The translations under genes were made by a program, and so were the position numbers. This document shows, piece after piece, positions 29,501 through 64,000 of a stretch of DNA of 64,000 nucleotides. Origin of the DNA: Takakia lepidozioides (taxonomy: Eukaryota; Plantae; Bryophyta); assembly GCA_030704615.1 (NCBI GenBank), contig CM060734.1, positions 9,300,001-9,364,000 on the forward strand, in the 5' to 3' direction. The notes under the pieces were generated by a model. That model saw only the letters and a list, made by a program, of their open reading frames with translations. It was not told the origin of the DNA and ran no database searches. Every line of letters starts with the position of its first letter. The first letter of the stretch is position 1.

Positions 29501-31198
29501 ATCCTCAATGAGGAGGGACCTGAAAGTTACATTCAGATCTTGTTTCTTTTCCAGAATAATTGCCTGTTTGGCATCTAGAGAAAGATGATCACTAGATGTT
29601 GTATCCTCTTCATACTCATCTGCCCCCCAATTCCCTGCATCAATGTCGTCAATAATGGTTGCAAGCGTCCCGGCCTCCACAGCTTCAGTTGTAGTAGTAA
29701 TTTCCTAATTCCATAGACCAAAACAGTTCAAGATGTCAGTGTATGAGGAGAGCACATGTGTGAATGTATAATATGTAAAAAGAGCAGTTCAGTGTCATGG
29801 TTGCATGAAGAAAACAAATGAATTTGGATAGTCAACTAATTCCATGAATATCCTTGTCTTTCAAAGCTTACAACTTGGAGCAGAATACAGGCGTGAGCAT
29901 CCCGACAGAGGACCTCCGACCACCTACGCCGGCGCATATGACACATATGTGCAACCAACTCAAAATTTGACAAGATTTGAGGCCCTTGAAGAAATTTTTG
30001 CTCAAGGAGCTCCAAGCATATGCGCCGGCGCATACCATGGAAGAGAGGTTGTAGCCAAACATACAGGAGCACCTTGAAAGATCAAACTAGGCCTATGGAA
30101 GCATGTGGAGTTGTGGAGGTGGCAACGTAGAAGCTTTGAGATACTTGAATACTGTGATCAACCAAAATAGGGAAGGTTCCCCAAGCGTCTGCGCCGACGG
30201 AGGTGGCAGCCTCGACACTTTGGAGCTTACGTAACACAAGGAATATACAACAAAAAACCAAGCTCCAAGCATCTCCGCCGGCGGAGATGCTTGCATGAGG
30301 TTCCTGAAACCTAGGAGCTAAGCAAAAAAAGATTGTGCTCAATGGGTATGCGCCGGCGGATATGGCAGCCCAGCCCCGCTCGAGCATCAACAACTTATGA
30401 GAATGCGGAGAAACAAAAGAGATGGAAGGGGGGAGAACTTCCTGAAATATGTGAGCAGCCCTGCTGCACGGGTCTGTGTTGACAGAGGTGGCAGCCTTGG
30501 CGCTTTGGAGCTTCCTAACACAGGGAATATGCGCAAAAAAAACAAGCTCTAAGTGTCTCCGCCGGCGGAGACGCTTGCAGGAGGTTCCTGAAACCTATTG
30601 AGCTGAGCAAAAAAAATGTACTCAATGGGTATGCGCCGGCGGATATGCCAGCGCAGCCCATCGGAGCATCAGCAACTTTTGAGCATGCGGAAAACAAAAG
30701 GAGATGGAAAGGGGAGAACTTCCTGAAACATTTGGCAGCCCTGCTGCACAGGTATGCGCCGGCGGATACGCCAGCCCAAACCCGCTCGGAGCATCAGCAA
30801 CGTATGAGCATCAAAAAAATAAACGGGATGGAGTAGAGGAGCACTTCCTGAAACATGCGAGCTCCCCAGCTCCAACGGTATGCGCCGGCGGAGGTGGCAG
30901 CCCAGCCCTTCCAAGCATCAGAAAAAACCAAGGGGAATGAGCTGTCTCCGCCGGCGGAGACGGTTGTGTGTATGTGTGGAGATTCGCAAACTTGTGAGAG
31001 TTGAAGTGACTTAGGCATCTGCGCCGGCGGAGGTGCTAGATTAGGAGCAGCTTGGTGGGGCTTATGCGATGGCGCATATGCCTAAGTGCAGGTCATGAAA
31101 AAAACAAAACTACAGCTTACCTTCTCCGTCCGCAGCTTGCCTCTACCACCACCACCACCAGCAACGCCTCCCCCTCGAGTGTCCTTCTTCCTCCCCAT
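26596..31198 (-). CDS. Transposon accessory gene encoding a ParB/Srx-like domain protein (multi-exon; at least one frameshift)
   Basis: Exon 1 31198-31121 (MGRKKDTRGGG...TEK|gtaag), intron 31120-29705, exon 2 from 29704 with IPLCRMISMQVVRP and FHVWDGNHRLQAW (about 29187-29216). Further exons at about 28949-28778, 28660-28253, 28163-27925, 27741-27340 and down to about 26596. Collinear homologue at 59-64 kb. 3' exon limits are approximate. Confidence 0.75.
29922..31078. repeat. Array of about 16-bp palindromes T(A/C)T(G/C)CGCCGGCG(G/C)A(T/G)A inside intron 1 of the ParB-like gene
   Basis: Perfect CGCCGGCG cores at 29927, 30023, 30276, 30351, 30560, 30634, 30757, 30883, 30949, 31022; variants at 30192, 30477, 31067. 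Embedded in degenerate ~284-bp and ~125-bp repeats. Confidence 0.92.
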
Positions 31199-32260: not shown

Positions 32261-35200
32261 ATGTCTACACCAAAATATGCAGTGCTTTCATGTCCACCTG
32301 ATGCAAAAGTGGTTCGTTATCCTTGCAATGGAAACAAGTGCATTATCCCAGAACCTTGGTTATGCAATAGATTCAAACTTGTTCCGGGTTCAGTTTTTTT
32401 GGAGGATGATGGAGATGATGATGCCTCCACAGTGTTGCTTCCAGTTTTCAATGACGGCCAAAAGCAATGGGAGTTGTTTCCAGACACTTTCTCCAAGTAC
32501 CGTGTCACAGGTACGAGCTATACACAGTCACATGATGAGAGGCACACTTCTATTGCAAGAAAACGATCAAGCTGCAACAAATGGGAGTTGTAAATTGAAG
32601 GAGGAGGTTGCAGATTCGGCGAGCTTGGGGTCTCATAATTCGGATTGTGTTGAGGTTTCTAAGAGTGTATTTTTGGATCTCAACCTTCCTCATCTGCTCA
32701 TACGGTCTTGCTTCACGACATGAAGCCTCGGAAAACTCCATTGGACAACACCACGTCTGATTGTTGCGAATCTGCGAGGGGTTTATCTTCATCTCCACGA
32801 CTAGCAGGGGAGGCTACATCTGCATTTCCTTCTGGTGTGTTGTCCATTTTGAGTATCTTGGCCACTGCTCGGAGGAATGGATCAAAAGGAGAGCTTTCTA
32901 CCTTGGACTATAGTCACATTCCAGTGCATCGTGTTCGGTGTCTTCCTCGAGCTTTTGATGGAAAAGTGATCCACGAACTCCCCCCCGTGGTCAAACTACG
33001 TACGGACCGTGGTTCACAGTCCCTCCAAGGCATGGACCGCAAGTTTGATGGTCATCCTTGGTGCAAGACCAATACCTACAATATGTCTGGTGTTCCAGAT
33101 CATGTGAAATGTAGTAAGGTTTGTGTTGGAAAGCTCATATGTCAAAGCAGCACTTGCCCCTTCTTCAAGAAAGAAGGAGAACGGAATGACCGCTATTGGG
33201 AAGGCAATGCAGACAAGGTGTTCATTGCAGGAGCCCAAGTTCCATTCAACCAGTTCAAGTGTAGTTTCTGCAAAGAAAGACCTTTCTGTGAGGCGCATTG
33301 TGGGGCAAGAATGTACTATGTCACAAGTTCCCTTCCAACATATACACGTGTTGCAGTTCACGTTGGGTTTCATAACCATCCATGTGCCAAGGGCGAGAAT
33401 AGAGAGCGAAATGCATCAAGCATGATTCAAGAGCACGTTAAGATGAAGCCATGGTCGACCCCCGGAGCTATTTCCTTGTCAATGGCCCAAAAGCTCTTGA
33501 TTGATCGAGTTCTTGTGGCTGATGGCACAGAGACAGTACGTCTTGAGGGAGAGGCTTTGGAAGATATTCTTGAAGAGTTTGCCCATGTTTGTAGCCCCAA
33601 TGTGAAAAACAAGGTCGCATCTGCACGTGTCAATTCCATCATGTCCATATTGGAGTTGAAGCGTCTGAGTACATACCATTTCATTCACAGCAATCTCCTT
33701 CCAGGCCAGCATACTTCTCATCTCCCCCATGTTTTCAAGATGTCTGTTGCTGGTCCCGGGAGTGGTGTTGATCTTGTGCGTCGCATGAGTGAGGGGGATC
33801 TACGCACAAGTTGGGTAGTATTTGACCATGTCAAACGCATCAAGGATTGGACAACTCTTGCGTGTCATGTCTATGAACCATATGTCAAGCGAATGATGAC
33901 CATTGCCATTTGCGATATGAAAACAGAGGATGCAGATGCTCAGGTGTTATTCTGGGAGATGATCAATGAACAAGCAAAACTTGCTGGCTTGAACAAACCA
34001 AATTTTGCTGGCTTCATGGCGGATGCAGCAGGAGCGAATTGGGCTGCTGTTCGAAGGGTTTATGGATCTGATCCCAATGTCCCAATGGAAGGTAAAGAAA
34101 GAACATGTTTATATCATTGGGCTGAAAGCCTCCGAAGACACACCAACGACTATATCTTGGAGGACTTCCGTGAAAGGCACACTCAGCTCTGTTATGAATG
34201 GAAAGATAGTGCTACCTTGGAGGATGCTACAACCACATACATTGCAATTCGGGCTTGGTGGCTCTCTTCAGGAGCATGCACAGAAAAGAGTCTGCCAAAA
34301 CTAGATTCATGGCTTGCATGGTGGCACTACAGATATCGAATGTGGGGCCAATGGATGAGAGAGGACATGGATGTGGAGGCAGATGCAGATATGCCTACCA
34401 CTAATTTGTCTGAGGCAGTCCATTCTGCTTGGTGGAAGACAGCAGGCAATGGGAAAAAAATGAAGGTGGATCTATATGAGGCCACCATGCATGACATGTC
34501 ACGAGCTCTTTTGCAGCAGGCAACATTTTACAGGCACACCACAGGAAAGACATGGGGGACGGGGCCCGACAAAGAGGAGCTCATGTTGCGTCAAGCAGCT
34601 AGATCTAATAGCCCAGCAAAAATGGGTAAGGTTGTACGTGGCATAGTAGCTGGAACACCCATGCACACAAGGGGGGTTCAATTGGAGGGAGACAATCGCA
34701 CTATTCCAGTCAAACGCAAGTTAGGCGATGAGCATGGTGGGCCAAACGAATCTTGGAGGTGTGATATGAATGTAAAGACTGTTCCAGTGCGCGCCCACTG
34801 GGATGCCCAGTCCACACCAGCCATCTAGGTTTGTCAGCTCCAAATCAAGTCATGACATTCCTGGTTCTTCGACTTTCTGTGAGACAAATCCACATGTTGC
34901 TATCCCTCCTCAGCCAATGCAATGGGGAAATCCAGTGAGAGAGACACAAGACTTTTCCGATGCATTGTTCAGGATTCAGCGGACAGGTCCTGCTTCCATG
35001 GTTCGTTGTTCTGCCTTGGTTGGAGTTTCCAAAGATAAATGCAAAGCGCTCATCAGGAAAGGTAAAGGAAGTCCTGCACCTTGCTTCACTGGCAAGTTAC
35101 TAGCACCGAACATGAAAGAACCAAAACTGCAAGTTTTTTGGTTTTGCCCCACAGATGTTTTGTCGTGTGTTGGAGGGACCGTGCCATCCTATTGCTTGGG

Positions 35201-43639: not shown

Positions 43640-44830
43640 ATTGTGTCCGCACAATTTTGTCAGTGCCTGTGGCTCTGGGGAATGTAGGGTGGTGGCATGC
43701 CCTGCTGTTAGCTTGTCTGCTGGTTGAGGAGTGCCTCCCATGTTGGTGATGGCTTTGGTGGCAGCTTCTTGTTCCTGTTATCGTCGCTGTCTGGTGCCTC
43801 CTTTGGCTCCTGTATGGGCCATCTCTCCTCATCCGGGTGTTCTGATTTCCGTCCCTGCATAGTGTATCTATCTTGGTGGACATGGCCTTGCAGTAACTGA
43901 GTAGCTCCTCCATGGTCCAAGGCACAATGTCTCAGGTTGCCCTGCTACTCATTAACCAGTTAACTGCTTGTGTCGCTGTCTCCTTGAAGGGGTGGTCTCT
44001 ATCCAGTACCAACGGTGAGAAGTGCTCTTTTGCCTAGCGCCACGCTTCAGCATAGAGTGGTCTGTCTACATATGCTAAAGTGCCCGAGACTCTCTCTGGT
44101 GGATGGAATTTGGGCAATTCCCAGTGGGTATCCTTGTCAATGCTCTTGTATCGCTGCCAACTTGCCCGCATTGTGGTGAGCATCCTGTACAGGTAACTGC
44201 CAATGTAAAAGCTTGGGGAGCCCATTACCACATCAACTGCTGGGGTGGGGTTGATCTTCAATTGCCCCACTGCCCACATGTAGGCTACCAACTCCTTGTA
44301 CTCCAGGGGAGCTTGGCGCCAAAATTCTACCAATTCTGCCCTTGACCATGTCTCATCCTTGCCAAGTGGCCGCATTCTGTATCTCAGGGGTATGAGCGTC
44401 TGATTGAGCATATGCAGCTGGCCTAATGACTTGCAGGAGGTTAAGGCCTTGAATGCCTTTTCCAACATGTCTAGGATTTGCTGGGCTGGCATGATCATCA
44501 TCTTGAAGTATTCCTCTGAATACTTGAGCCATTCCCATCTCGTTTGCATGGCATGATTTGAAAATCATCCACTGCTACTGAAGCTGATGCCACAAGAATG
44601 CTTGGTAATGGCACAGTGGTTACCTCTTGGTTGGATGGCCCTGCTGTGGCCTGTACCTATTCATGTTCAAGCTGTGGTGGTTGTACCGCTGGTGGTGTTT
44701 GTGCTGGAGTTGTTGTTGTTGATTGTATTGGTGCTTCTTATTTTTGTTCATGGTCTTGTTCCTCCTGTTGATCCTCGTCCATTAGTTCCTCTTGTTCTAG
44801 AATTGGTGGGGGGGGGGGGGGGGGGTGGGT
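43640..44830 (-). pseudogene. Degenerate unknown ORF immediately upstream of the PPT (extra 3' ORF of a gypsy-type element)
   Basis: Overlapping minus-strand ORF pieces (44549-44034, 43925-43614) with helical, protein-like composition; no recognised pol motifs. Confidence 0.45.
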
Positions 44831-45138
44831 TTCTATGAGCAGTGAGCACCCAAAAACATGAGCAGAGGCCGAATAATGGGCTAAAAGTGGATTTTTTAAG
44901 AATATTCCCTCCAAAACACTCAATATCGGGGGTGTTTATGGGCCCAAAACGCCTTATTTTGGGCTAAAAAATAGAGCACAAATTGTCAGTTCCGCATGCA
45001 AGACGGGTTCGGCGGCGTTGGCACTTCCGCAAGTTGGCAACGATTTGCAGGCAAGAAACCGTGGTTGCAGCCACGTGAACGTACCCACGGTAATAGGTGG
45101 GGTTTCTATAACCGTGGAAAATTACATGGCTTAACATG

Positions 45139-45491
45139 GGAAGTCGGCGCATAATTGGATGTGTGCTGGACAAGACACTCAGAACTGACAAGTCGGCACA
45201 GCCTTTGTGATGGCCCGTACAGTTGTATAGGGTTTGGGAAGTCTGCACAAACTTCTCCATGGTCCATACAGTTTGGGAAGTTGGCACAGACTTCTCCAAT
45301 GAGCGGAAGAAGTATATTTCAAATGGTAAGTCGGCACTGTATTCGACATGGCCTTCAGGCCTCATTTTGAGATGGGAAGTCGGCACAGACTTCCCCATAT
45401 CCTTCAGAAGATTCTTTGGAATGGTAAGTGGGCATCGCATAGAAGATGGTCTCCAGGTGTGACAGAGAATTGGAAGTCGGCACAGACTTCT
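45139..45491. repeat. Dispersed array of hyphenated palindrome GAAGTC-GGCACA-GACTTC
   Basis: About 7 full or half copies at about 45140, 45190, 45237, 45276, 45327, 45374, 45472. Confidence 0.8.
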
Positions 45492-46313
45492 ACATATCAC
45501 TTGCATGTTTAGGTGGGATCTGAAATCCGTGCAAAATTGTGGGGTGTGCGAGAAAAAGAGCACCTTGCGGCATTTCACAGAGTTCGTTCCGGACTTAGTA
45601 CAAGATCTACTGCCTGCACCCTCTCAGGCAAAAGTGAACATGCAACAAAACTCAACATTGCAGAAAAAATGGATCTTTTGCCGAGGATCGAAACGCCTTA
45701 CTGCAACAACATTGCTTACGACCACTCATGATACCGCTTTTTGGCGTCACTTGAGCAAGGGTTCACCTTGAACCTTTTTTGACTAGGAAGATAACCTTGA
45801 ACCAACCTTGCGCCCCAATCACTGGAATTGGGTCCGCCTTGGAATGCTGGCATGAGGTATGAGAACACGCCGAAGCCGCACTACGACTTCGTCTCAAGGT
45901 TACACGATTATAGTACGTGAACGGAAGCACGTAGCTTCCGCGTTAGCCCGCACTACAAGGCAACCCTCCGGTAGCGCAGTTTTAGAATGCGCACGCGCCA
46001 GGTGCGCACTAGCACGTGAATTCCCAAGGAAGGCGCAAGTTTCCTTGCCCCTTGGATGGGAGTCACCCGATTTCGGCGCTGCGCAAACACACAATTAATC
46101 CAATTTACCTCTCCCACTTTTTGTAAGCTAGCATGCATTCTACACACTAGCCAACCAGACCATGCATCACCATTCCAAACAAAATAGGAAGCACAACATT
46201 TGGAAACAATTTCATTTATAAACAAAATTTGTACAACACAAGTCTTTGCAATCGGATTCCTAAGCTAGCTAAGCCGGACTAAGCATGCATTTCCTCCCCT
46301 ACGATCCAAGGTT

Positions 46314-46443
46314 CATTTGGCATACATGTCAACAATGGTGTTCTCTAAAATGATGTCTAGGGCAATTCCACATTTGATGATGTCAGCATGAACCTTTGTA
46401 CCCTTCTCCAGGGCTCCTAGGCTGGCACACGCATTGAAAACCC
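46314..46443 (-). pseudogene. Isolated PPR fragment (about one repeat)
   Basis: Manual translation VFNACASLGALEKGTKVHADIIKCGIALDIILENTIVDMYAK. Confidence 0.8.
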
Positions 46444-46444
46444 A

Positions 46445-46893
46445 TCAACACTTCTTCCGCTTTTGAGGTCGCCCTTCGAAAGCTACAACCGCCTCGGATA
46501 CGTTTCCCATTTCTGAGGCACGCACCCAAGTTGCCTCCACTTGATGATAGCCCTTCCATTTCACGAGATACTCCGTTTCTCGATTCTTGAACCTCCTCGA
46601 CTTAAGCACTGCCTCCACCTCGTACTCAGGTTCATTTTCATGATCCAACGGCACAGGTGGCGGATGTAACACTTGATGCCGATTCGGACGCGCTTCATGT
46701 TTGAAGTAAGGCTTCAAAAGGGAAACGTGGAATATCGGATGCACCGTGCTGTTTGCCGGCAGCTCCAATTCATAAACATCCTCATTCATAACCTTCCGGA
46801 TGCAAAAATGCCCCGCATACGGAGGTACGAACTTTGGACTCACTTCCGGAGGTAGTCCAAAATTCTTGATGTTCAACCAGACCTCCATGCCTG
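46445..46893 (-). mobile_element. Chromovirus (Ty3/gypsy) integrase C-terminus with chromodomain
   Basis: KFVPPYAGHF (GPY/F region), YELELP...HPIFHVSLLKPY, EYEVEAVL..R.....EYLVKWKGY...ATW. Confidence 0.92.
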
Positions 46894-48629
46894 TGTCGTG
46901 GCCCTTTGCCTTGAGGGCGGGGGGTCGGGACACAAGAGGGGCTTCCCCTGTGGTGGGGGCAGTGGCAGCAAATAGGAAAGGGGACTGAAGCACCCTTGAG
47001 TGCCGAAGGCACTCAAGGAAGCGGTGGTGCTCACTAGGTGGAGCCCCGCAAACCGGGTTGCGGTGGTGGGGGCTCCACAAGGGGTGGTGGTAGCGTAGGG
47101 AGTCATAGTGGGGGTGACATAGGACTCACCATGAGGCTGAGGCCTTGTGGTGGGAGTCGTGGGGAGTCTTGGGACTCGCCACGGTCCATTGGGGCCGTGG
47201 TGGGTGGGCCAAGACTCACCACGGCTCACCATTGGGACGATTGAGGGTCTAAGTGGTGGTGCACCAGATTTGGACTGTGCTACTTGTGGAACCCCCCCGG
47301 ACACCTACAAAAGTATATATAGGGAGTAGTAACCCCGAGAACGGTGCAAGCCCGTTGGTGACCAAAAACTAGTGAGTAAGCGTGCGAGCCGGAAAGCAAC
47401 CAAGGTGTGGGGAACTGTTCCGAAGTGCCATCTATCAAAGGGAATTTCCACTGAGCCCGACAGGTTGAGGATCGAGTGGGAGTGTGAGGGGGATGGTTAT
47501 GCCCCGGTGAGCAGCCGAAGCTCCGAGTTGGCCCGGCGGCCGGTTTGGGAGTTAGGCGTGCGCATCAAAGTGAGTAACTATGACTTGAAGGGGAGTTTAC
47601 CGAAGTGAGGTGCGCGACATTTGGTATCAGAGCTTAAAGTTTAGTACGCGATTGTCCTTGAGATCGGCCTCACCATGGGGTCGGGCAAGACAAAGCGAAA
47701 GCGGAACGGCCCGAAAGACGATGATCCTGGTGAGCCCGGTGGGGGCGACGTGTCACCACTGCGGCAAATGGAAGAGGCGATTTATGCTTCTGAAAAGCAA
47801 GGCCGCTCAAGAACGGGAGGAATTTGGGGAGTCGGAGCCCGAGGACTTCCCAAAGGCTCCGCCAGACCAACAGATGTCTCCCATGCCAGCAGCGGGAAGG
47901 GTTGTTGGCGCAGTTTGGCGGGACGTTGAAAGACGTGATGAGGGCGGCTAATGCCACTTCCACTAATGCAAAAGTTTAAGGTGAAGCCTAAGGAACCCGA
48001 CACCTTCGAGGGCGTCCAAAATTGGAAGGCACTCAACACTTGGCTCTTGGAGCTGGAGCAGTACTTCCGGGCGCCAAGTTGAGTGACGAGGATCGGGTGG
48101 AAGTGGCTCCCACCTATTTGAGGGGCTATGCTCAACAATGGTGGCAGAAGTGTCTTCATGACCAAGGGCCAAACCCAGAAACCTTGAGCTGTAGTGGGTT
48201 CAAGGAACTTATGAAAAGACAGTTTGTGCCCCTCAATGCGTCCTGGCTCGCCCAGGACAAGATGAGGAACTTGAAGCAAACGGATGACATTCGGGGATAT
48301 GTTCAGGCTTTCAATGTGTTGTTGCTCGAAGTCGCGGATATGGCAAAACCAGAAATGGTCTTCAACTTTGTGGCGGGACTGGCCCCATGGGCCAGACGGA
48401 AGTTGGAGGAGAGGCCACCAAAGACTTTGAAGGAGGCAATTGAAAGGGCTGAATGTTTCTCGGATGTCCCTAGGAGCGAAAGACGGGGCCGTACGGAGCT
48501 GAACCACAAGAAGGTCCGGCAAAGAAGTGGGATAGGCCACGCGGGCGCAATGACACATGGAAATCGAAGGGAGGGCCTTCGCACGTCAAGGCGGCGCCCG
48601 GTGCTCCGAAAGGAAAATCAGGTGCAGCG
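46894..48629 (+). mobile_element. Gypsy 5' LTR (46894-47619), tRNA-iMet PBS (47622-47633) and truncated gag
   Basis: LTR TGTCGTG...CGCGACA, PBS TGGTATCAGAGC, retrotransposon gag motifs (PDTFEG..WLLELEQYF, YLRGYAQQWW, LKQT..IRGY..F, FVAGL). Confidence 0.88.
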
Positions 48630-48802
48630 GTGGCGGTGCGTCAGAAGGAGGACATGAAGGGATTGCTTAGGTGGATTGAGCATTTCATGGTCAAGTACTG
48701 GAACAAGCTTTTCCACTACGAGATGGTGGAGGGCCCACATAGGAGCTGGGGTGTCCTTGAGCAGCCAGGGGGGATGCAGCCTGCACGTCAATTTGTCTAC
48801 AG
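48630..48802 (+). pseudogene. Exon fragment of a third homologue of the ParB-like transposon accessory gene
   Basis: LLRWIEHFMVKYWNKLFHYEMVEGPHRSWGVLEQPGGMQPARQFVYR|gt aligns by eye with LRDYVTRYFLLYKTDLFFREIPHAHRSHEFTDQPNGDKAAMRLLYR|gt and ...HFNELFHREFSLPKGPFRGNDWEQQTGGEKVVRRILFR|gt, with the same splice position. Confidence 0.7.
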
Positions 48803-50468
48803 GTATGACAATGCAGTCCCTGTGTTGTTTTTGTAGAGGTGGTAGTTGGGAAGTCTGCACAAATTTCTCGATAGGATGCGGACAATGGCGAAAGTCTGGG
48901 CCGATTTCTGAATGTGCAATGCCTCGCTTTTTTTAGGGTACATCAACTTCTACCTTCTGCCCAACAAACACATTCAAGCTATTCCGGCGATGGTTTCCCC
49001 GTCGCCAAGGGCTGGATCACAGATTGAATTATACTTCGCAATCTTTGAGTGCCATTTCGCATACTGCCAGATTTGCATCCAGAGCTGATTCCACAATCTC
49101 TGCATTCTCCAGGGTGTTGGAGAGGTGGGAATACTCCGCCAGTGTGTCATCCGTTATCTCCCAAAATGACTCATGTGCCATGAACTCAACAAGGCTCTCC
49201 CGTGTCAATGTCATCGAATTGGTGTCTCGTTTGTTGAGGTGTAGTGTGAATATGTGGTTATTTTGCAGCTGTTCGATGGGCTAAGTACTTAAGATTTTAC
49301 AACATTTAAGTAGTTGGATGAATAGCAGTGATGGATGAATTATGACTCATTGGATGAAGACATCCATCCGCCAAACATCCATGTGCCTAGATCGGCGGGA
49401 TTGATGAGTGACGGCGTTTTTCATGCAAGCACACAAGCACGGGTATGGCGAGCTCCTGACACTTTGTATTCTGGAGCAGACATCAGCCTACATGCCTCAG
49501 TTTTTTGTTGCAATTTATTTTCATGTTCCTTAGTCAGTATCTGCGATGGCGGCTGAGTTAGTTTTCTGGACAGAGCTAGTTGATATGGTCGACTATAGGA
49601 GCTGCAGGTGTAGTAATTGCACAGGCAAGTGGGGTTTGGGTTCTAAGGCAGTTTTTGGTGAGAAGGTGGCTCTTCTTACTTTTCGGCAGATGGTAGTGAG
49701 GTAGGAAGGATGAGATAGAGAAGAGGAGGTGCTGATGGTGACGTGAACGAGAGACTTGGGCTTTAAGCTCCACACTCGTTATTTTGTGCAGAGGAAGGAT
49801 TATGCTGATGAAGAAGTAAAAATTGACTGTTTGGGTCACTGCTTGGTTTTTGAGTTTGAAATCGCACTTGCATGATGCATTAGTTCCTGCATTGGTGCAT
49901 GAGGGAAGTCTGATTGCAGCTATGGTCAGTTTGAGCATGTAAAAGGTGTGGGTGCAATAGCTGGGAAATCTGGGCATGTAGGTAGTGCATCACTCAAACC
50001 ACCTAGTGGGGAGACTCCACATTGCATAGATGGAATATTATGGTGCATCTGTATAGTGGCAGCATTGTTGATTGTTTCCAAAAGGTCAGTCGAACCTGCA
50101 GCTCGTGCGTAACTGACGAGTGTATTTGGATCTGACCCTTGGACTCGAGAGGTAAAAGATGAGAGGGAGTGCGAGAAAATGAGCGGATGCCGGGTAGGCT
50201 CGGGTAGTTCGATCAGGCTGTCTGACGGGGGTGCCATGAATACAAGAGGGTGACTGCTCTTCACGGGCAAGGCCCACCCTTCAAGGGGGAATCTATGAAG
50301 GATATGCTGGGTGTTTGTAGCATGCGAGATCACATGCAAGGCAATTGTTTATTTGTGACGGATGTGTGTCCTACCTATGTCTTCTCTTCCACTGCGGCAT
50401 GGGTGGGACGGAATGGTACTCTAGTGACTTGAAGTGAATGTTGTGGGGAAACGTTTTGCCCCTTTCTT

Positions 50469-51300
50469 TGGTATCAGAGCTGATGTTGTCCTCTGGCTCT
50501 GTTGAGTTCCTTTGTGACAGATTGCTTTGTGCATGTGTGAATACATAGCCCGGATCGTGTTGATTTGACCTACTTGTAGTAACGAAGCAACTTGCAGGAT
50601 GTTGGGTCTTTAGCTGTGAACAAGAAACTCTACAGGTTGGGTCTTCAAGTAATCCAGGTTCAGAAGGGAACAACGGCTGAGAAGGGAGAGTCCAAATAGT
50701 GCGCATCCGAGAATCTTCCACGGGCCAGGCTTTCCACAACAAGCCCTTAGACAGCGGCAAGTGCAACTCCACAAAGAAGGAGGCATTAAAATTGTTGAAT
50801 GAAAAGCTGGACGTGAAGAAGTAATCAGCTAAGTAGGCAACAGACATCCTGAGAAGACCGGTACATGCTGAAGTGGTGCATGAGGGAGAGACGCTAACTG
50901 GAGGAGAGATTTGTTCAAGCAAAAACTGACATTCACGAGGAGCCTTTACAAAACACATGAGGCACTGGGAATCACAGGTGAAGGGAGTAATGTGAGCAAA
51001 AATATGCTCAAAACAAGCACCATGCAAGGTACCATCAGCCCTGCTGGGGTGGGTGTCCCTTTTTCTGGCACTCAATCCGAAGATGTGGTGGAATGGTTTG
51101 AAAGAGTGCAAAGGGCCATGGATGAGGCGATAAGTAAAGATAAGCTTCCCAAGGTGGCGAGACTAAATTTGTTTGGGAGGGCTGATACCTGGTACAGAAT
51201 GCAACAGCCACAACCATCAAACTGGCATGAATTACAAGCTGGGCTTTTGAAGAAGTTCGGTGGCACGAACGAGGAGAAGCTTGCTACTGCTACATCAAAC
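50469..51300 (+). mobile_element. LTR retrotransposon relic: iMet PBS and gag fragment
   Basis: TGGTATCAGAGC at 50469-50480; FSGTQSEDVVEWF...LFGRADTWY...WHELQAGLLKKF. Confidence 0.7.
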
Positions 51301-51538: not shown

Positions 51539-53005
51539 TGTCGTGCGCATACATATCACTACACAACTACATTGTTGTACAATCCTCACAACACATATAT
51601 AACCACAAACCAGTCTGTCACAATGATAGAGAAACTCCATAAATCACTCATACTTGGTTAAGCCCACTGCACCCCAAGGCCATGGGGAATCCACAGTACA
51701 CAACGCCATAGCTGCCAGACGTGGTGAGGCTCAACTCAAGAGAGATGAGCCTCACCTCATCTGATGCGAGGATAACTCCCCCCAGGGCCCATTATTAATT
51801 TTGGGCCTTGGATTGACACTCGGGCAAAATCAAGTGTCAATACGAAACAACTAGGTACTTCTTAGCTAGTTTCACACTAGCTACATTAAACTAGATATTT
51901 TTTTACTAACTAGTAAGTTAACTTGACAGTTGTCGTGCGCATACATATCGCTACACAACTACATCGTTGTCCAATCCACACAACACATGTATAACCACAA
52001 ACCAGTCTGTCACAGTCGCCCCCCTAGCTGGTGGTTAGGTCCCTCTAACTCCAGATAGCTACAAGAGGTAATAGCCACATCCTCACTAAGTCCTCTATCG
52101 TTGTCCTTATTGTAGTCAAACTCTATAGACCAAGAGGCCGGGTACAAGAGTAGCCCCATCGTCAGTCGCCGTCTTGCAATCTGTGAACTTGAGCCAAGAT
52201 CTCGTGTATTGGTCTCCTAGTAGCTTGGCCTTGCATTTCTTGTTAGCCTTCCATGGTTGTATTCACTCCCACTATCCAATGCAACGTGGACATAACCAAT
52301 CTCCATCAGGAGCCATCTGAAGAGGTGGCGTCAAGCATCCCATGTGCCAACCTCTTGAGCATCGATCACACACCAGCATGGTGGCTGCCCCTCTGGCAGA
52401 CCCACACAACATGCACCTCAAACCTGCAGGTACCACGGCCAAGTTTGGGTCAATCCTTTCATCAACATTTGGAATGTGACATGGCGCGCAATTACGCACA
52501 TGGTCCTTCCAAGTCCTGCCATCCCGACCCTCCAAGATCATGACTCCTAACGGCAACACCTCTCGAACCCTCAAGATAATATGTCCTGCTGTCACATCCA
52601 CGGTCATAGGAGCAGTCTGCTGCAGATAACATAGTCACCAGGGTTAAACCTCCGAACCCCGGGACGATAGCCTCTACCACATATAGTGGCATATCTCAAC
52701 GTATCGTGGTGTTGTGCAATGGCAAGGTTCTCGAAAGCCATGGGCATGACTTTCTTGAACAACTCCACGCACTAATCACAGGCACGTGCCCACACGTCCA
52801 GATCGTCAAGATTGAGGATTGAAGCAACGTCTCTATGAATGGATGTAGGCAAATCTGGCTCTCGGCCAAAGAGTAGAAAATATGGTGAGAAGGAGGCAAG
52901 TGATGCTTGCTTGCTGAAATTGTAGCCCATGACTAACCACGGTAGCTGAAGGTCCCAATCTCCCAGGTGACCCTTCTGCAAGCCATACTTGCGCAAACCT
53001 CTTGT
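51539..53005 (-). mobile_element. Gypsy element 3' end: integrase C-terminus with PHD finger, PPT and LTR
   Basis: WDLQLPWLVMGYN.S.QAS...SPYFLLFGREP; C4HC3 PHD CMLC...LVCDRCSRGWHMGCLTPPL...PDGDWLCPRC; PPT CTAGGGGGCGAC; LTR-like 51539-52014. Confidence 0.88.
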
Positions 53006-55864: not shown

Positions 55865-56200
55865 TGCGACCTCCAAATGGTGGTGGTCGCAGAATTTATC
55901 TTATTTTTATCAGTTGCGACCACCAGCAGAGGGGTTGTCGCAGCATTTAAAAAAAATAAAAATAGATGCGACCACCAGCAGGGGCGGTCGCATTTTTTTC
56001 TTTTCTTAAACAGTTGCGACCACCGCTACTGGTGGTCGCACAATTTTTATTTTATTTGTAATAGGTGCGACCACCATCAGGGGGGTGGACGCAACATTTT
56101 TCTGTTTTTTAATATTTGCGACCACCAGCATGGGGGTGGTCACAACATTTTTCTGTTTTTAATAGGTGCGACCACCAGGAGGGGGGGGGGGGAAATGATT
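55865..56200. repeat. Seven ~50-bp units, each a TGCGACC...GGTCGCA hairpin separated by A/T tracts
   Basis: TGCGACC at about 55865, 55915, 55967, 56015, 56066, 56117, 56167. Confidence 0.85.
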
Positions 56201-56739
56201 TTTTCTTCGCTTGCAACTTTGTGTATGTGATTTGTACGTACTTAAGCACATATGGACCAAAGTTTAACTTCAACAAAGTTGTTTGAATGTGTTATTCAAA
56301 TTCATAACGGAGGTATGTGTCATATAGACGAGAAACAATCTTTCGCTTGCACATGAATTGTTTTTTATTCCATTCTGAAGCCATATGCTTGATAACAACA
56401 TGAAGAGTTGCATGCAAAATATCACCATGAACAGACATCGTCTGCATCCAAAACACATTTTATTCCCTCATTTGCACTCCAAGGTGAAGTTATCTTCAAC
56501 TTCATGCACTCTTCATAGAGAGTTCTGCAATAGTGAGCATAAAGCAAATGATGAACGTTTTTTTTCAAACATTTTTCTTTGGTACATTTTTTTGCAAGGA
56601 TGTGGTGGTGTGAGGGTTCAACTCACAGAACAAAATCAAGCCAAAAACAAAATCATTGCGCCCCACACCATTGCGCCCCACAATCCTATGCCCTCTAAAT
56701 CATTTTATTTAGTAAAAATCCAGTTCAATTCAAAATTGG

Positions 56740-58950
56740 ATGAAAGGGTGAACGGAAACTTCCCCGATGAAATGATATTTTATTGCTCCGAAACTTTGCA
56801 AGTGTCTTCTACATGCCCTCTTACACGTCTTTGAGAAATATGACATCAATCTAAAATGGCTTAAAGGGTGAACCAATCGTCCCCCTACCAAATGATTTTA
56901 AATTGATTTGAAACTTTGCAAGTGTCTTGCATGCCCTCTTACAGGTCTTTCACAAGTTTCAAGTCAATCTAAAATGGTTGAAAGGGTGAATCAATCATGA
57001 ACATATCAAATGATTTTTTAGTGCTTTAAAGCTTTGCAAGTGTCTTTCACATGCCCTCTTAAAGGTACTGGACAAGTATGAGGTCAGTAAAATATGGTTG
57101 AAAGGGTGAACCAATTGTTCCCCTATCAAATGATTTTATATTGCTTTGAAGCTTTGCAAGTGTCAGCCACATGCCCTCTTACAAGTACCGGACAAGTATG
57201 ACGTGAATAAAAAATGGTTGAAAGAGTGAATCAATCATTCCGCTATCAAATGATTTTATATTGCTTTGGATGTCATTGCTTTGGTAATTCTAGCCCTCTA
57301 ATGGCCCATTCTAACCCTTGAATTACAATTCAAGATGCAATTCAAGCCCTTAAAATTGGTAATGCCAGTCCTTAAAATGACCAACCCCGGCCGCCCCTCA
57401 AATTGTAATTTGAGCCCTTGAAATTGTCAATTCCAACCCCTCAAAATTGCAATTCTAGCCCCTGAAATGGCAATTCCCGCCCCTCAAATTACAATTGTAG
57501 CTTGTGAAATGGCAATTGCTAGTGCAGCCCCTGAAATTGGCTATGGGTGAACCAATCATTCCCCTGCCAAATGATTTTGGATTGATTTGAAACTTTGCGA
57601 GTATCTTGTACATGCCCTCTTAAAGTTAATGGACAAGTATGATGTCAATGTAAAATGGTTCAAAGGGTGAACCAACAGTTCCCCTGTTGGATGATTCATG
57701 ATTAATCGTTAACGATTGATCTCATATTACACTGGGACCTATCATAGGGTACATTGAACACACTGGCCAAGTTTCAAAACGAACAAAAATCATTTGGATG
57801 GGCAACCATCCGTTGGCCCATTGAACGAATTTCAATTGATCTCATATTACTCTGGGGCCTCTTCCATGGTACATTAAATATACTGGCCAAGTCTCAAAGC
57901 GAACCAAAATCATTTCGATGGCCAACCATCCATTGAGCCATCGAATGAATTTCGATTGATTTGATATTAGTCCGGGACCTGTGAGAATGTGTCTCAAACG
58001 TACTGGAAAGTTTGGAAGCAAACAAAAATGATTTGGATGGGCAACCATCCGTTCACCCATTGAATGTATTCTATTGGATCTGCTATTACTTTGGGACCTG
58101 TTGGACTGCATTTCGCATGCTCATGTTTTTTTTTTTCATTCCATTTTTGAATGGGGCGTGTAATGACTCCATATGCAATGTGCGTGCCAAATTTGGGAGC
58201 GATCAAAATTCATTTGGACCCAAAACCACAGTTTCTTGCCTGTTTTGCACTCCAAACTTGATTTGTGCTCTACTTCATGCACTCTTCATAGAGAGTTCTG
58301 CAATAGTGAGTGAAGAGAACACTTTTTTTTAGGGGCATTTTTTATTGGTCCAAATTTTGGCGGGGGAGTAGCAATGGGATGTTTGAAGCCGCAAAACAAA
58401 ATTGAGCCAAAAACAAAATCGATACGTGCCAGAAACCCCCAATGAAAGGCATTACAAACCTATTTATTGGCTTAAAATTAATTTAAATTGGAATGGCTCG
58501 AGGGGTGAGCGCGTCGATGGGGAGGCAAATGATTTATTCGTCTGTTCATTTATTTGTGATTAATCATTAATGGTGAAAAGGATAAACCAAAGGTTCTTTG
58601 ATCAAAAAAAATTTGAATGATTTGAAATTTTGCCAGTATGTTTTACATGCCCTCTTACATGGACCGGACAAGTATGAGATCAATAAAAAATGGTTCACAG
58701 GATGAACCAATGGTTACTTGATGTGCCAATTTCTGAATGCTTTCAAACTTTGCCATTGTATTGTACATGCCCTCTTAAAGGTACCGGACAAGTATGAGTT
58801 CGATTTAAAATATTGCAATGGGTGAACCAATGGTATCTTCATTCAGCAATTTTTGATTGTTTTGAAACTTTGCCAGTATATTGTACATGCCGTCGAACAG
58901 GTACCGAACAAATATGAGGTCATTCAAAAATGGTTCAAGGGATGAACCTC
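56740..58950. repeat. ~120-bp tandem repeat arrays in both orientations, with an inserted ~21-bp repeat block
   Basis: Forward units at about 56743-57270, 57545-57700 and 58577-58950; diverged inverted units at about 57716-58100; short repeats at about 57280-57545. Confidence 0.85.
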
Positions 58951-59044: not shown

Positions 59045-62000
59045 CTAGTCATCTTCATCTAGATTAATTACTTCGTTGTCGTCATCTCCAGATGTCGATG
59101 AAGATGCTGCGGGTGTAGAGGACGTGCCTCCACCAGTACGGAGAGTTCGAGCCTGGGCTCGAGTGGTTAAAGAGGGACCCAGTGTTGTGTGGTCCACCCT
59201 TGCCATCATGCGTAGCGTTCTAGGCGAGTGCTGACTCTCTTCCATTTGCCAGAGCCGGGTTTGTCGCTCTTACTATGGCTTCATGCAATTTTTCAAATAA
59301 ATCCGATATGTTTGGAAGTGGCAAGAACCCCCCTGGAATAGGGGCAACTTGGTCACGCCATGTGTTCTGCCAATACTTTACAACACTCGTGATGGTAGCC
59401 ATGAAATTGTCTAACACCTCCTCCTACTGGGGGTCTCTGCGCAACTCTGGAGGAAATGGCCCTTCATCCCGACGAGGCACCCAATACCTCTCATTCATAT
59501 CATCCCAACGGATGCTAACGTTCTCCAACTCCCTCAGAAATAGGTCTCTCCCAATCGGTTCGCGATTGTATGGGTCGTTTTCCCCTGACACCCATGGATC
59601 CTCAGGCAGTCAGAAGAATCTTTGTCTGGTACAGCTCCAATGCCCTCCCAAGTTCTGGCAAAAAAGCTCCCTTTGGATTGGTCTCGTATGCCTCTAGCAC
59701 GCACGGTTATTTCCCAGTTGGATGTCACCCAAAAGGTCACCGGATCTTTAACCCTAGATAACGTCATAGCATTCAAGGCGTGCATCTCTCTTGGAGCATC
59801 CCATGTCATTGTCTCCCCCCAGTGCTGACAATTTAAAAAATCGTAAGGCTCCACATCCAATGGCATGTTGTACCGGTTGTACTTGTATCCCGTGGGCATA
59901 TTGTCTTGCAACCCAAACAACTCGTAGAAACGTCGATGGATTGGTCCACGGCAGTCAGGGCATTGGCTGGCTCGCATGGCTGTCGATATGAGACATGTGG
60001 GGTGGAACAAATGGCCACATGAACCAAGCATATAGCCTCCCTCCGGTCCGTAAGGGTTTAGGCACATTGTGCACACCGTACCATCTGTTACCCATGTCGC
60101 TGGATTGCTCCGTGGTATCCACGTCCGCGATTCCTCATGAATGTCAGATGACATCCTCGGCCTGCTGTCCCACTCCACCTTGACTTCCAAATCCCAGTTT
60201 ATGTTCTTATTGGTATCGGAAATTGTATGCACACAGTGCTCAAACATGGCATCCTCATCACCCCATGTGGTGAATCCAGTGTACTTCGACGTGAATACAT
60301 CACGCATAGTGTCATGTCTTTGCTCATGGATTCAAAACCAGGGGTGTCTTTAGGCTCTGTACTGGGAGCCCTCTTCTTGGCTTTCCCCTTCAGCTCCTCC
60401 ATAGACTTGTTGTGTGCCACCTTCTTCGCCCTGGCAGCCAGAGCGTCAAGGAAGCTCTCATTGACACATTGGATGATGGTTGGGGGTTCTAGCTTTGGCC
60501 TCTGTGGAAACGTCACCGCCGAATACCGCCGTGTAGGCTCGCCCTCAAATGCCAACTTCTTGGCAGAGCCAGTCCTAGTCCGAACTGACTTGGGAACCTG
60601 GACAACTGGTGACTTGGTACCAGCAGCAGCAGTCGCAGGACCTTGCACAAAGTCGTCATCGGAGTCATTCCCTTGGGGGTTATTTTACTCCCCTGTTTCC
60701 GTGTCCTTTTCTTTTGACCTTTATTCTTCTCATTCAATTTCTCCTGAATACCTGCCTGAGCAAGCTCTGCCGCTTTCCTGGACTTGGCAAGCGCTTTTGC
60801 CTCCTTTGGACCCAGCGGAGGCAGTGGAGCCCGTTTTCGTCGGGCCTCCGCATCCAGCTTCAATTGAAACTCGGATGAGTCGAGCGAGCCGGGCGGAAGG
60901 TCCACATACCAAGAGCAGTCGCGCAAATGTTCCAGATGCCACTCCTTCACGATAACGTCAGTGTACATGGAGTCAGCCCCAGGGTTCCTCCATGCGAGGA
61001 AGAATGGCGGCTCAAAGGACAGATGACCTTTCTCCAAAAGGGAGAACTTGCAGTACCTGCATTCAAGAAACACACACAGAATGAGGTCCCGGGAACAAGG
61101 TAAATTATAGGGAATGAAACTGCAAAATAGACGCGAAAAATGGCGCCGAATAAACGAATAGACGCCGAACTGACTGGGCCCGGAACTGGAAAAATGGCGC
61201 TGAATTTCCAGTTTCGGTGCCAGCCACCCCAGGGACTTAGCCATTTTCGGGGCCCTGAAGTGGAAATTCGGCGCCATTTTCCCAGATTGGGGCCAAAAAT
61301 GGCTAAGTCCCAGAACTGACTGGGGCCGGAATTGGAAAAATGGCGCCGAATTTCCGGTTTTGGTGTCAGCCACCCAAGGGACTTAGCCATTTTCGGGGCC
61401 CTGAACTGGAAATTCAGCGCCATTTTCCCAGCTTGGGGCTGAAAATGGCTAAGTCCCAGAACTGACTGGGCCCGGGAGTAGAAAAATGGCGCCGAATTTC
61501 CAGTTTCGGTGCCAGACACCCCAATGACAGCCATTTTCGGGGCCCTGAACTGGAAATGTGGCGCCATTTTCCCAGGTTGGGGCCGAGAATGGCTAAGTCC
61601 CAGATCTGACTGGGCCTGCAACTAGAAAAATGGCGCCAAATTTCCAGACTAAGTGCCAGCCACCCCCTGGATAGCCATCCCCCAGGGCCCGAATCCGGAA
61701 ATTCGGCGCCATTTTTCCAAGGACTTCTTCACAACTAATTTTCATGCGCCACATAAGGCCTCTTAAATCCTCGAAATGTAGGGACTAAAAAGAAAGGCAT
61801 CGCGTATGTACCTGTACAGAAGGCGCATTGCCGCTTTGTCCCCGTTCGGCTGGTCGGTGAACTCGTGGCTCCGGTGGGCATGGGGTATCTCTCGAAAGAA
61901 TAGGTCGGTTTTGTAGAGCAGAAAGTACCTCGTCACATAGTCGCGTAGGCTCTCTGCTTCACCAGAAATCTCCAGCTTGAACTGATGTGATTGTGTGTCA

Positions 62001-64000
62001 AGCTGCTCTTGCGCATTCGTCATCACCTGTGGACATTCTCCATCAGACCGCTTTCCTCAAAAAATACAATAAATCCATCTGATACAAGAGTAGAAGCCCC
62101 AAATGAAGCGTGGGAAAGTACCTGAAACCACCATGTCATGCGGTTCATCCACATGTCGAATGTGGGGTCGGACAGTTTGTCGGGTTTGGGGAAGCTCCAC
62201 ATGTCCCTTGTACTTTGGGAACCATTCCAGATTTGGAGCTACCGGGTCTGTCCAACCACCTAGCATATTAGTAAGCGCCAAACACCACAAAAACGAATTG
62301 CTGCCACGACATTTTTGGTTAAGAATGTATAACCTTTTCTGTTGCATCCACACATGATGTGGCTAGACGATGCAGCTTCTCCAATGTCATCATGGGCTTC
62401 AGAGCGCGGGAGTAGTGCTTCCCCACCTCCACCAGAAAGTCGGCACCAAGGGCGGGATCAGCTATGGCCATGTACTTTACCATCCGCGACTTGTACTTTA
62501 TGCAGGCCTTCGCCTTCGCAACTTTGAGATACGATTCCAGTGCTGGGAGGGTTAGTTTCTTCTCCTTTGACTCCATGTAGAACCTCCGTGCATGTGCCAA
62601 ATCTTGCTGAATTTTCGTCTGTCAAGAATGCACAGATATGATTAGAAATCCTGGTCAACACTTTATCTTCTATTGGGGAAGGTGAGACAGATAAGCTGAA
62701 CAAAACAGTCAGGAGCTTTACCCAAAATATGTAGTCCACCATGGCATCCATGCTCAGCCTATACCAGATTCTGTCTGCCTTTGCCTCCGACTTGCGCAGC
62801 AGGTCGACACTGAGCAAATTGGCAAACTCTTGCACCCCCTGCTTCTCGACATCCTTCACTCGGAAGAGCATATGGGACAAGTTGGTGGCAAAGAAGGCAT
62901 TCTCAGTCACCCTGCAATGCCACATTTCCATTAAACAATACAGAAATGAGAATTTGCAACAAATATGACGATTGGCAATGAAGTGACTGTTTCAAATTCA
63001 AAGTTCCAAAGCAAGAGGCATTGTAACTTACGAGTTGATGTCTGCCATTGCCGCTTTGAGAAGACTGCAATCTTTGGGCCCCGCAACCTTGAGCACAACA
63101 CACTCCATGGCGAAACGCCAATCCAGGACGTTGGGGTGGGCTTGGGCTATGTACTCCATCCATGCCAGGAGGCGATGATTGCCGTCCCACACGTAAAACA
63201 TCTTTCTGGACAAGTGCTGGAAAAAGGATCAGTAGCAATCAATCTCTCGAACTCCTCATTTCGCCTTTGCCAATGGGGACCCCATTTGTCCACCTCATCG
63301 GAAGTGTAGGGACGAAAAGCTCCGTGGTCGTTCTCCATGGAAACGTAAAACGTGGCAGACCCCATTCGATATCCCTCCCGGAAAGAGAATTTCAGCTTGT
63401 CGATATCGCCTGGGAGGGCAGGTCTCACCACCTGGACAAAGGGGAATCCGAAAGCTTGGCCGGGTACACCATGCCCCCTAGGACCCTGCCAATGTTGCTG
63501 TGGGTTGCCTCCAACATCTTGGCAGCGGCCAACTTCATATCCGCCTCCGACATGACGTCTGTTGCAAGGGGGGTTCTCCGGTAGCCCACCCGGACCGCCA
63601 AATCCAGCATGTATGCTCCGGGTTTGGGGCCTGGGGATGTCCGGGAGGAGGTCATCCTGGTCAGAAAGCTACCTCTCGTCGTCCTCAACATGGTCAACCA
63701 CCGCCGGAACCACCTCGAGCACTCTCCCCGTCTCTACTGCCCTCTCCCCGGCTTCACCTCGAACTTCCACAATCCGTGCTCTTTGTGGTGTTCTTTCCCC
63801 TCCTCCAGTCTCCACCATATGAGTAATTTGGTGGGCTGCTCCCACCTGCGATGGTGTAACCGGTGTGTTACTGCCTGTTTGTGGTGTCTTGGAGGGATCC
63901 ACCGTCTCTATGCGTCCCTCGCTTACATGGGCATCTGTCATTTCAACAACCCTGGCTTCTTCAGTGGCCTTTTCTGTTGCCTCCTGGCTAGCCTTATGTC
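59045..64000 (-). CDS. ParB/Srx-like domain protein with C-terminal RING-H2 finger (multi-exon, frameshifted, 5' end outside window)
   Basis: VRPALPGDIDKLKFSFREGYRMGSATFYVS, FYVWDGNHRLLAW (about 63160-63189). Introns at the same positions as in 26596-31198. Last long exon from 61056 leads to CTMC...SCGHLFHPTC......CPDC. Confidence 0.75.
61137..61716. repeat. Intronic ~145-bp tandem repeat with AAAATGGCGCCGAAT motif alternating in orientation
   Basis: Nine copies at about 61137, 61191, 61263(rev), 61337, 61409(rev), 61483, 61553(rev), 61627, 61699(rev), within intron 61057-61811. Confidence 0.9.

Follow-up and report, generated by a model that had tools for sequence, protein, structure and literature searches.

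At the right end of a 64,000-nucleotide (nt) stretch of Takakia lepidozioides DNA (contig CM060734.1, positions 9,300,001 to 9,364,000), which was analysed at its full length and is referred to here as the window, two decayed transposon accessory genes most probably abut on the same strand, having been joined by truncation or nested insertion. The first is a ParB-like gene on the minus strand, designated copy B; a related gene in the same window, copy A, occupies 26,596-31,198. The second is a piece of a RING-H2 gene lying immediately downstream of copy B. The initial annotation had combined them in one gene, with the RING as an added tail of the ParB-like protein. This view is not supported: the combination was present in no related locus or RING relative that could be reached, the reading frames of the two parts differ, and the family to which the RING piece is assigned is an independent one. 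As it stands, the region is ordinary: a dead copy of one transposon accessory gene beside a fragment of another.

What is left of a multi-exon accessory gene with a DGNHR ('ParB-like') domain, its methylase part lost, extends from past the window end at 64,000 to about 60,9xx. In intact relatives, the Lys-rich linker of the corresponding gene leads on to an N6/N4 DNA-methylase-like domain, and genes of this kind carry a family-specific near-palindrome array. At 60,322-59,048, immediately downstream, comes the C-terminal half of a RING-H2 gene that is large, has no introns and elsewhere lies beside a hAT transposase; frame shifts and a stop break it here too, and a 120-bp satellite follows. The two genes may have come to be joined by truncation, deletion or nested insertion at this locus, or else by the capture of a fragment, and presumably no ParB-RING protein is made today.

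The RING-H2 finger itself proved to be real. It is located at 60,073-59,948 on the minus strand and has the canonical spacing C-x2-C-x14-C-x-H-x2-H-x2-C-x11-C-x2-C with all eight ligands (C3H2C3); two Pfam models match it above their cut-offs (zf-RING_2 with 30.6 bits against 27.3, zf-RING_5 with 31.0 bits against 27.9). The frame encoding the finger has 248 relatives in the representative library, 62 of which have E below 1e-10. The best of them is P0006 (1,077 amino acids), matched by residues 661-870 with E 7.6e-55 and followed by P0007, P0008 and P0017. Other long relatives are P0156 (1,154 amino acids), P0020, P0026, P0027 and the already mentioned P0017 (787 amino acids). Members of this family have about 800-1,150 residues: a conserved domain at the N-terminus leads into an extended coiled-coil or low-complexity region, after which come the RING module and a tail with an acidic end.

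In tblastn, the long relatives match the window by their C-terminal parts only (P0006, for example, by residues 658-929), and nothing anywhere in the window corresponds to the N-terminal halves of P0006, P0017 and P0156. A family hidden Markov model (HMM) built from 21 members was matched collinearly by positions 373-709 of 709 in three frames, from 60,289 to 59,114 (E 2e-75), while positions 1-372 matched nothing in the copy B region. Because the HMM and tblastn matches are limited to the C-terminal parts of the relatives, the piece at 59,048-60,322 (minus strand, best match P0006) is, on grounds of homology, the 5'-truncated C-terminal half of a large independent RING-H2 gene, itself broken and decayed.

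In contig L002, the 1,154-amino-acid RING gene is intronless, forms a single open frame and is convergent with a hAT transposase gene (DUF659, E 1e-20; Dimer_Tnp_hAT, E 7e-11). The RING-H2 module and tail found here share 34-43% identity with the long relatives and remain collinear with them to the end. In contrast to the L002 gene, only the last half is present here, without the N-terminal domain, the coiled coil or a nearby hAT transposase or kinase. What the copy B region holds is a fragment, not a member gene, of the hAT-adjoining RING family. In L083 (1-3,685), a gene of the RING family is split into four consecutive same-strand frames of 112, 482, 386 and 258 amino acids; decayed RING copies are therefore common outside the Takakia genome too.

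The RING open frame has its own ATG at 60,307, encodes 257 amino acids and retains all eight zinc ligands, as might be expected of an independent small domesticated RING-only gene with a transcript of its own. Such a gene is nevertheless very unlikely. Homology to the family does not end at the stop of this frame but can be followed in other frames as far as 59,048, interrupted by a frame break and a stop codon, and the 257-residue frame is for this reason regarded as a fragment of a longer decayed gene. Furthermore, a word search with the RING frame returned nothing in its length band, and an exact look-up of the 257-residue product gave no record.

The initial annotation had also assumed that the last exon of copy B runs through the Lys-rich linker into the RING. 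This does not agree with the reading frames, which shift twice, near 60,68x and within 60,331-60,289. The frame of the exon beginning at 61,056 ends at 60,516. Another frame is open over 60,684-60,202, and only at 60,331, following a TGA, does that of the RING begin. The 560 nt between 60,927, where clear homology to copy A ends, and 60,322, where clear homology to the RING family begins, are Lys-rich and show only weak collinear similarity to copy A. The Lys/Ala-rich linker is delimited at 60,332-60,889 on the minus strand; it contains the frame break near 60,68x, and the junction of the two genes probably lies somewhere inside it. A GT..AG pair bridging 60,62x to 60,31x in frame was rejected as unsupported; the frame has probably already shifted by then, and pairs of this kind arise by chance.

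Altogether, no fewer than six frame breaks and a pair of in-frame stops occur in the decayed copy B region. The stop-to-stop frames and homology frames place the changes near 63,44x, 63,22x, 60,68x, 60,33x-60,29x, 59,66x and 59,25x, the last two lying in the RING piece. Both stops are TAG codons, one at 63,669-63,671 and the other, within the RING piece, at 59,424-59,426. The N-terminal domain of the ParB-like gene (..IPLC..VVRP.L to ..DGVN/EVNW) is a single exon in the intact relatives P0001 (from a Joint Genome Institute, JGI, metagenome contig), L009, L003, L005 and L056, and it spans three frames in copy B and two in copy A, where the break is near 29,369. The changes near 63,44x and 63,22x were considered as introns and rejected: since the intact relatives encode the domain as one exon, these changes are frame breaks.

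Long-read assemblies can miscount homopolymer runs, and short homopolymers are found near several of the frame changes (T5 near 63,22x, C5 near 60,68x and T6 near 59,66x). Assembly errors of this kind are possible for some of the breaks. That all of them are such errors, and that an intact ParB-like-RING gene is expressed here, is extremely improbable. The two stop codons (63,669-71 and 59,424-6) are due to substituted bases, not to miscounted lengths, and the junction interval contains no long homopolymer. Homopolymers of at least four bases are so frequent that chance alone would put one close to any frame change. In addition, copy B has a 95-nt interruption unique to it, and copy A as well as most of the metagenome copies are also broken.

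The occurrence of the two parts elsewhere was surveyed in both directions. Metagenome contigs scanned with the DGNHR block yielded 131 confirmed stretches, and 80 loci were kept, all of them from moss-associated samples. The kept loci have the same exon order as copy B. The suggestion that the ParB-like genes form an old family and are not a one-off capture is borne out by this wide distribution in moss-associated metagenomes with the exon order preserved. Neither homology to the RING family nor any RING-H2 pattern was detected in any of 81 related ParB-like loci, which cover 810 kb and are at most about 55% identical to copy B; 43 of them extend at least 3.5 kb downstream of the motif, the distance to the RING in copy B being 3.1 kb. 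Among about 160 RING relatives, there was no DGNHR domain and no match to the DGNHR loci. A word search with the N-terminal domain of copy B found nothing.

In L005, an exon homologous to the RYCKF..FLAW exon of copy B is followed by a Lys/Ala-rich linker and then by exons with methylase-like motifs. The methylase-like exon of this locus matches N6_N4_Mtase weakly (E 0.004, below the cut-off), and its weak phage matches are mostly DNA methyltransferases, including M.PhiCh1-I. Methylase-like exons are present in ten loci; none was found in or after copy B, and copy A retains only a remnant. Separately, L001 (11,728-11,979) and L076/L077 (11,482-11,733) point to an internal inversion in that lineage.

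Several observations weigh against two abutting genes. The RING piece shares the strand of copy B and stands at the exact place of the enzymatic tail of the relatives; no transposon end can be recognised in between, and this position fits a domain swap as well as a truncation. No close relative of copy B was found; the best loci are 40-55% identical, so that the absence of the RING comes from other branches. The 560-nt linker was assignable to neither gene, having in pairwise comparison no significant match to the L005 linker or to the middle region of P0006. Finally, neither a hAT transposase nor a kinase or its motifs were found in the window.

The strand and position of the RING piece and the lack of a transposon end would suit an ancestral chimaera, in which the C-terminal module of the hAT RING gene took the place of the methylase tail, perhaps through fragment capture within a Mutator-like element, and which once worked and is now decayed. 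The captured piece would then begin just upstream of the conserved module, as is the case, and the density of lesions is similar in both parts. Algal transposons are also known to combine ParB-like domains with different tails (PMC12477816; bioRxiv 10.1101/2025.02.11.637652). Such a chimaera is still considered unlikely: the frames differ at the junction, where the change occurs within 42 nt that contain no long homopolymer, no second example exists among the 81 loci and about 160 RING relatives, and the proteins of the RING family are complete, with a conserved N-terminus of their own. It is decidedly unlikely that a sub-family exchanged its methylase tail for the RING-H2 module, with copy B as a decayed member; in such proteins a site-specific head would bring a ubiquitin-ligase-like module to the element's own array. 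If the same junction were present in other copies, this would indicate that transposon accessory genes trade effector domains between superfamilies, and a testable case of a DNA-targeted ubiquitin-ligase-like protein (of putative activity) would be at hand. The hAT-adjoining RING gene forms a lineage of its own, to be kept apart from the ParB module.

The relationship between copy B and copy A is well defined. When 58.5-64.0 kb was compared with 25.5-31.4 kb by tblastx, eight collinear minus-strand blocks were obtained with a summed E of 6.9e-33, and copy B is therefore, as judged from these alignments, a true, diverged paralogue of copy A. The block-by-block homology described in the initial annotation was recovered in full (VRPAL..FYV, W.HW..N.EFE, KMF.VWDGNHRL.AW, IADP.LG and RY..F.L / EP.F..AW). 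The conserved introns were likewise found again after the splice strings had been located in both copies. Intron 1 (63,031-62,912 in copy B; 29,063-28,949 in copy A) is displaced by no more than two bases. The other three are identical in position and phase: intron 2 (62,721-62,619; 28,758-28,650) in phase 0, intron 3 (62,121-62,027; 28,253-28,161) also in phase 0 at WW.Q/GTAC, and intron 4 (61,811-61,057; 27,924-27,742) in phase 2 at AG/GTAC ... AG/GTAC. Copy A thus resembles copy B in exon order, in the conserved blocks and in three intron positions with their phases, and each copy has a site array of its own. They differ in that the protein identity within the blocks is about 40-65%, the array motif and the position of the array are not the same, and where copy B has the RING fragment, copy A has a different last exon together with a remnant of the methylase motif-I exon. 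The ParB-like family is of sufficient age that its two copies in this window have introns in common but differ in array motif and position.

The exons of copy B, all on the minus strand, were searched one by one. The most upstream part is an acidic open frame at 63,672-63,998 (delimited by stop-to-stop frames), which is cut by the window end, terminates in ..VEDDER and is followed by the in-frame TAG at 63,669-63,671. It is only loosely similar to the acidic exon at the N-terminus of copy A and is probably the 5' coding part of copy B. The exon with the N-terminal DGNHR domain (63,032-63,565) was delimited by tblastx against copy A and by alignments to relatives. It has two frame breaks and is 38% and 35% identical, in two frames, to the intact P0001. 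Exon 2 of the conserved set (62,722-62,911) is flanked by the shared introns 1 and 2 and gives weak matches to L009, L005 and L071. The next exon (62,122-62,618) carries the IADPALG block and ends in ..WWFQ; the 95-nt GT..AG interruption specific to copy B lies within it at 62,333-62,239, whereas copy A, L001 and L009 run on without it. It is followed by the exon ending in ..LLYR (61,812-62,026), whose donor AG/GTAC is common to copy A. The last stretch clearly homologous to copy A is 60,890-61,056 (RYCKFSLL..EPPFFLAW..SMYTDVIVKEWHLEH), with clear homology up to 60,927 and 31-37% identity to relatives.

Intron 4 of copy B contains a repeat array at 61,138-61,714, detected with Tandem Repeats Finder (TRF) and made up of nine copies of AAATGGCGCCGAATTTCC, a near-palindrome centred on GGCGCC. 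The sites alternate in orientation about every 72 bp, which gives a period of 146. Nine matches to AAATGGCGCCGAATTTCC compare with 0.08 expected, and there is none elsewhere in the window. The nine-site array supports the assignment of copy B to a family whose members carry their own site arrays.

On the other side of the RING piece, a 120-bp satellite starts 100 bp past the stop of the RING gene. TRF resolves it into three blocks, at 56,732-57,268, 57,715-58,099 (inverted) and 58,614-58,948. At 55,882-56,203, 500 bp to the left of the satellite, there is a tandem array of period 51/101 with the inverted-repeat motif GGTGGTCGCAAC ... GTTGCGACCACC. It is another family-specific palindrome array and may be part of the transposon remnant that includes the RING fragment.

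The name of the ParB-like gene calls for caution. The motif KMF.VWDGNHRL.AW is conserved in the alignment of copy B, copy A and their relatives, and it forms a strand followed by a helix in weak structure models. Pfam searches with the exons and with intact relatives gave no match to ParB_N (PF02195) even at E 10, and there was no significant ParB match in the PDB, searched by sequence and by profile, or among phages searched by tblastn. With hhalign, a profile of nine phage ParB_N sequences was aligned over 14 columns (MF.VWDGNHRLQAW against.IV.GEHRWRAA) with P 0.006 and a probability of 6%. The AlphaFold2 models are too weak to be used in assessing a ParB/Srx fold, their mean predicted local distance difference test (pLDDT) scores being 39.9 and 50.8, and a Foldseek search with such a weak model found no match at E of 0.001 or less. 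The label 'ParB' for the DGNHR gene thus answers, as far as the sequence goes, to a motif-level match only.

CTP-dependent ParB clamps (CTP, cytidine triphosphate) possess a GERRxRA arginine patch and further CTP-binding boxes. No GERR-type patch occurs in the alignment, which has DGNHRLQAW at the equivalent place. Because this motif is of the DGxHR type and not of the GERRxRA type, and because none of the searches gave a significant ParB match, the DNA-loading clamp put forward in the initial annotation found no support.

An Atlas search, in which language-model features are compared with the nearest named clusters, was carried out with the intact N-terminal domain of L009 (4,284-4,727). It placed fungal DUF3723 clusters first (10 of 30 matches, score 0.95), with ParB_N at rank 25. 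DUF3723 is a conserved cargo gene of function unknown in the giant transposons called Starships (PMC9156397). A distant link between the accessory genes of plant and fungal giant transposons is possible.

Genes of this general kind are already known. The Sola1 element of Ectocarpus (Sola1-1_Ec32) carries an accessory gene with a ParB-like domain and a DNA methylase (PMC12477816), and a red-algal Plavaka element has a gene combining a ParB-like domain with a 2-oxoglutarate (2OG) oxygenase (PAG3), with adjacent inverted-repeat arrays (bioRxiv 10.1101/2025.02.11.637652). The idea of one DNA-binding head with different tails is thus in print. By analogy with this literature, the N-terminal domain of intact members might bind the element's own repeat array and bring the enzymatic tail there. 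The moss genes share with the accessory genes of the giant algal Sola, Mutator and Plavaka transposons a multi-domain, probably transposon-borne organization, an N-terminal DGxHR-type domain and an inverted-repeat site array beside or inside the gene, and the moss metagenomes hold relatives that reach an N6/N4 methylase-like tail. Unlike the algal genes, copy B comes from a moss, lacks the methylase part, gives no significant ParB match and has no transposase visible beside it; none was found at 51-59 kb, and on the other side copy B runs off the window at 64,000.

A further comparison is offered by M.PhiCh1-I of the Natrialba phage PhiCh1, in which ParB_N is followed by a beta-class N6_N4 methylase and IADGEHRWRAA aligns with VWDGNHRLQAW. 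The likeness of the moss genes to such prokaryotic and viral ParB_N-N6_N4 methylase fusions is confined to the motif, as the hhalign values given above indicate. Unlike the phage fusions, the moss genes contain introns as well as an extended middle region and a Lys-rich linker.

Further features lie elsewhere in the window. Beside copy A, a 706-amino-acid open frame on the plus strand (32,708-34,828), which an earlier note had described as a Mutator-like transposase, has no Pfam match at E 0.01. On the minus strand, an open frame at 52,275-52,634 ends in a PHD-type zinc finger (C4HC3, ..CMLCG..LVCDRCSRGWHMGC..WLCPRC) preceded by an integrase-tail-like stretch, and it is probably part of a retrotransposon. 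A decayed Ty3/Gypsy chromovirus occupies 44,000-51,100, also on the minus strand, and its open frame at 46,445-47,080 includes a Tf2-1-type SH3 domain and a chromodomain.

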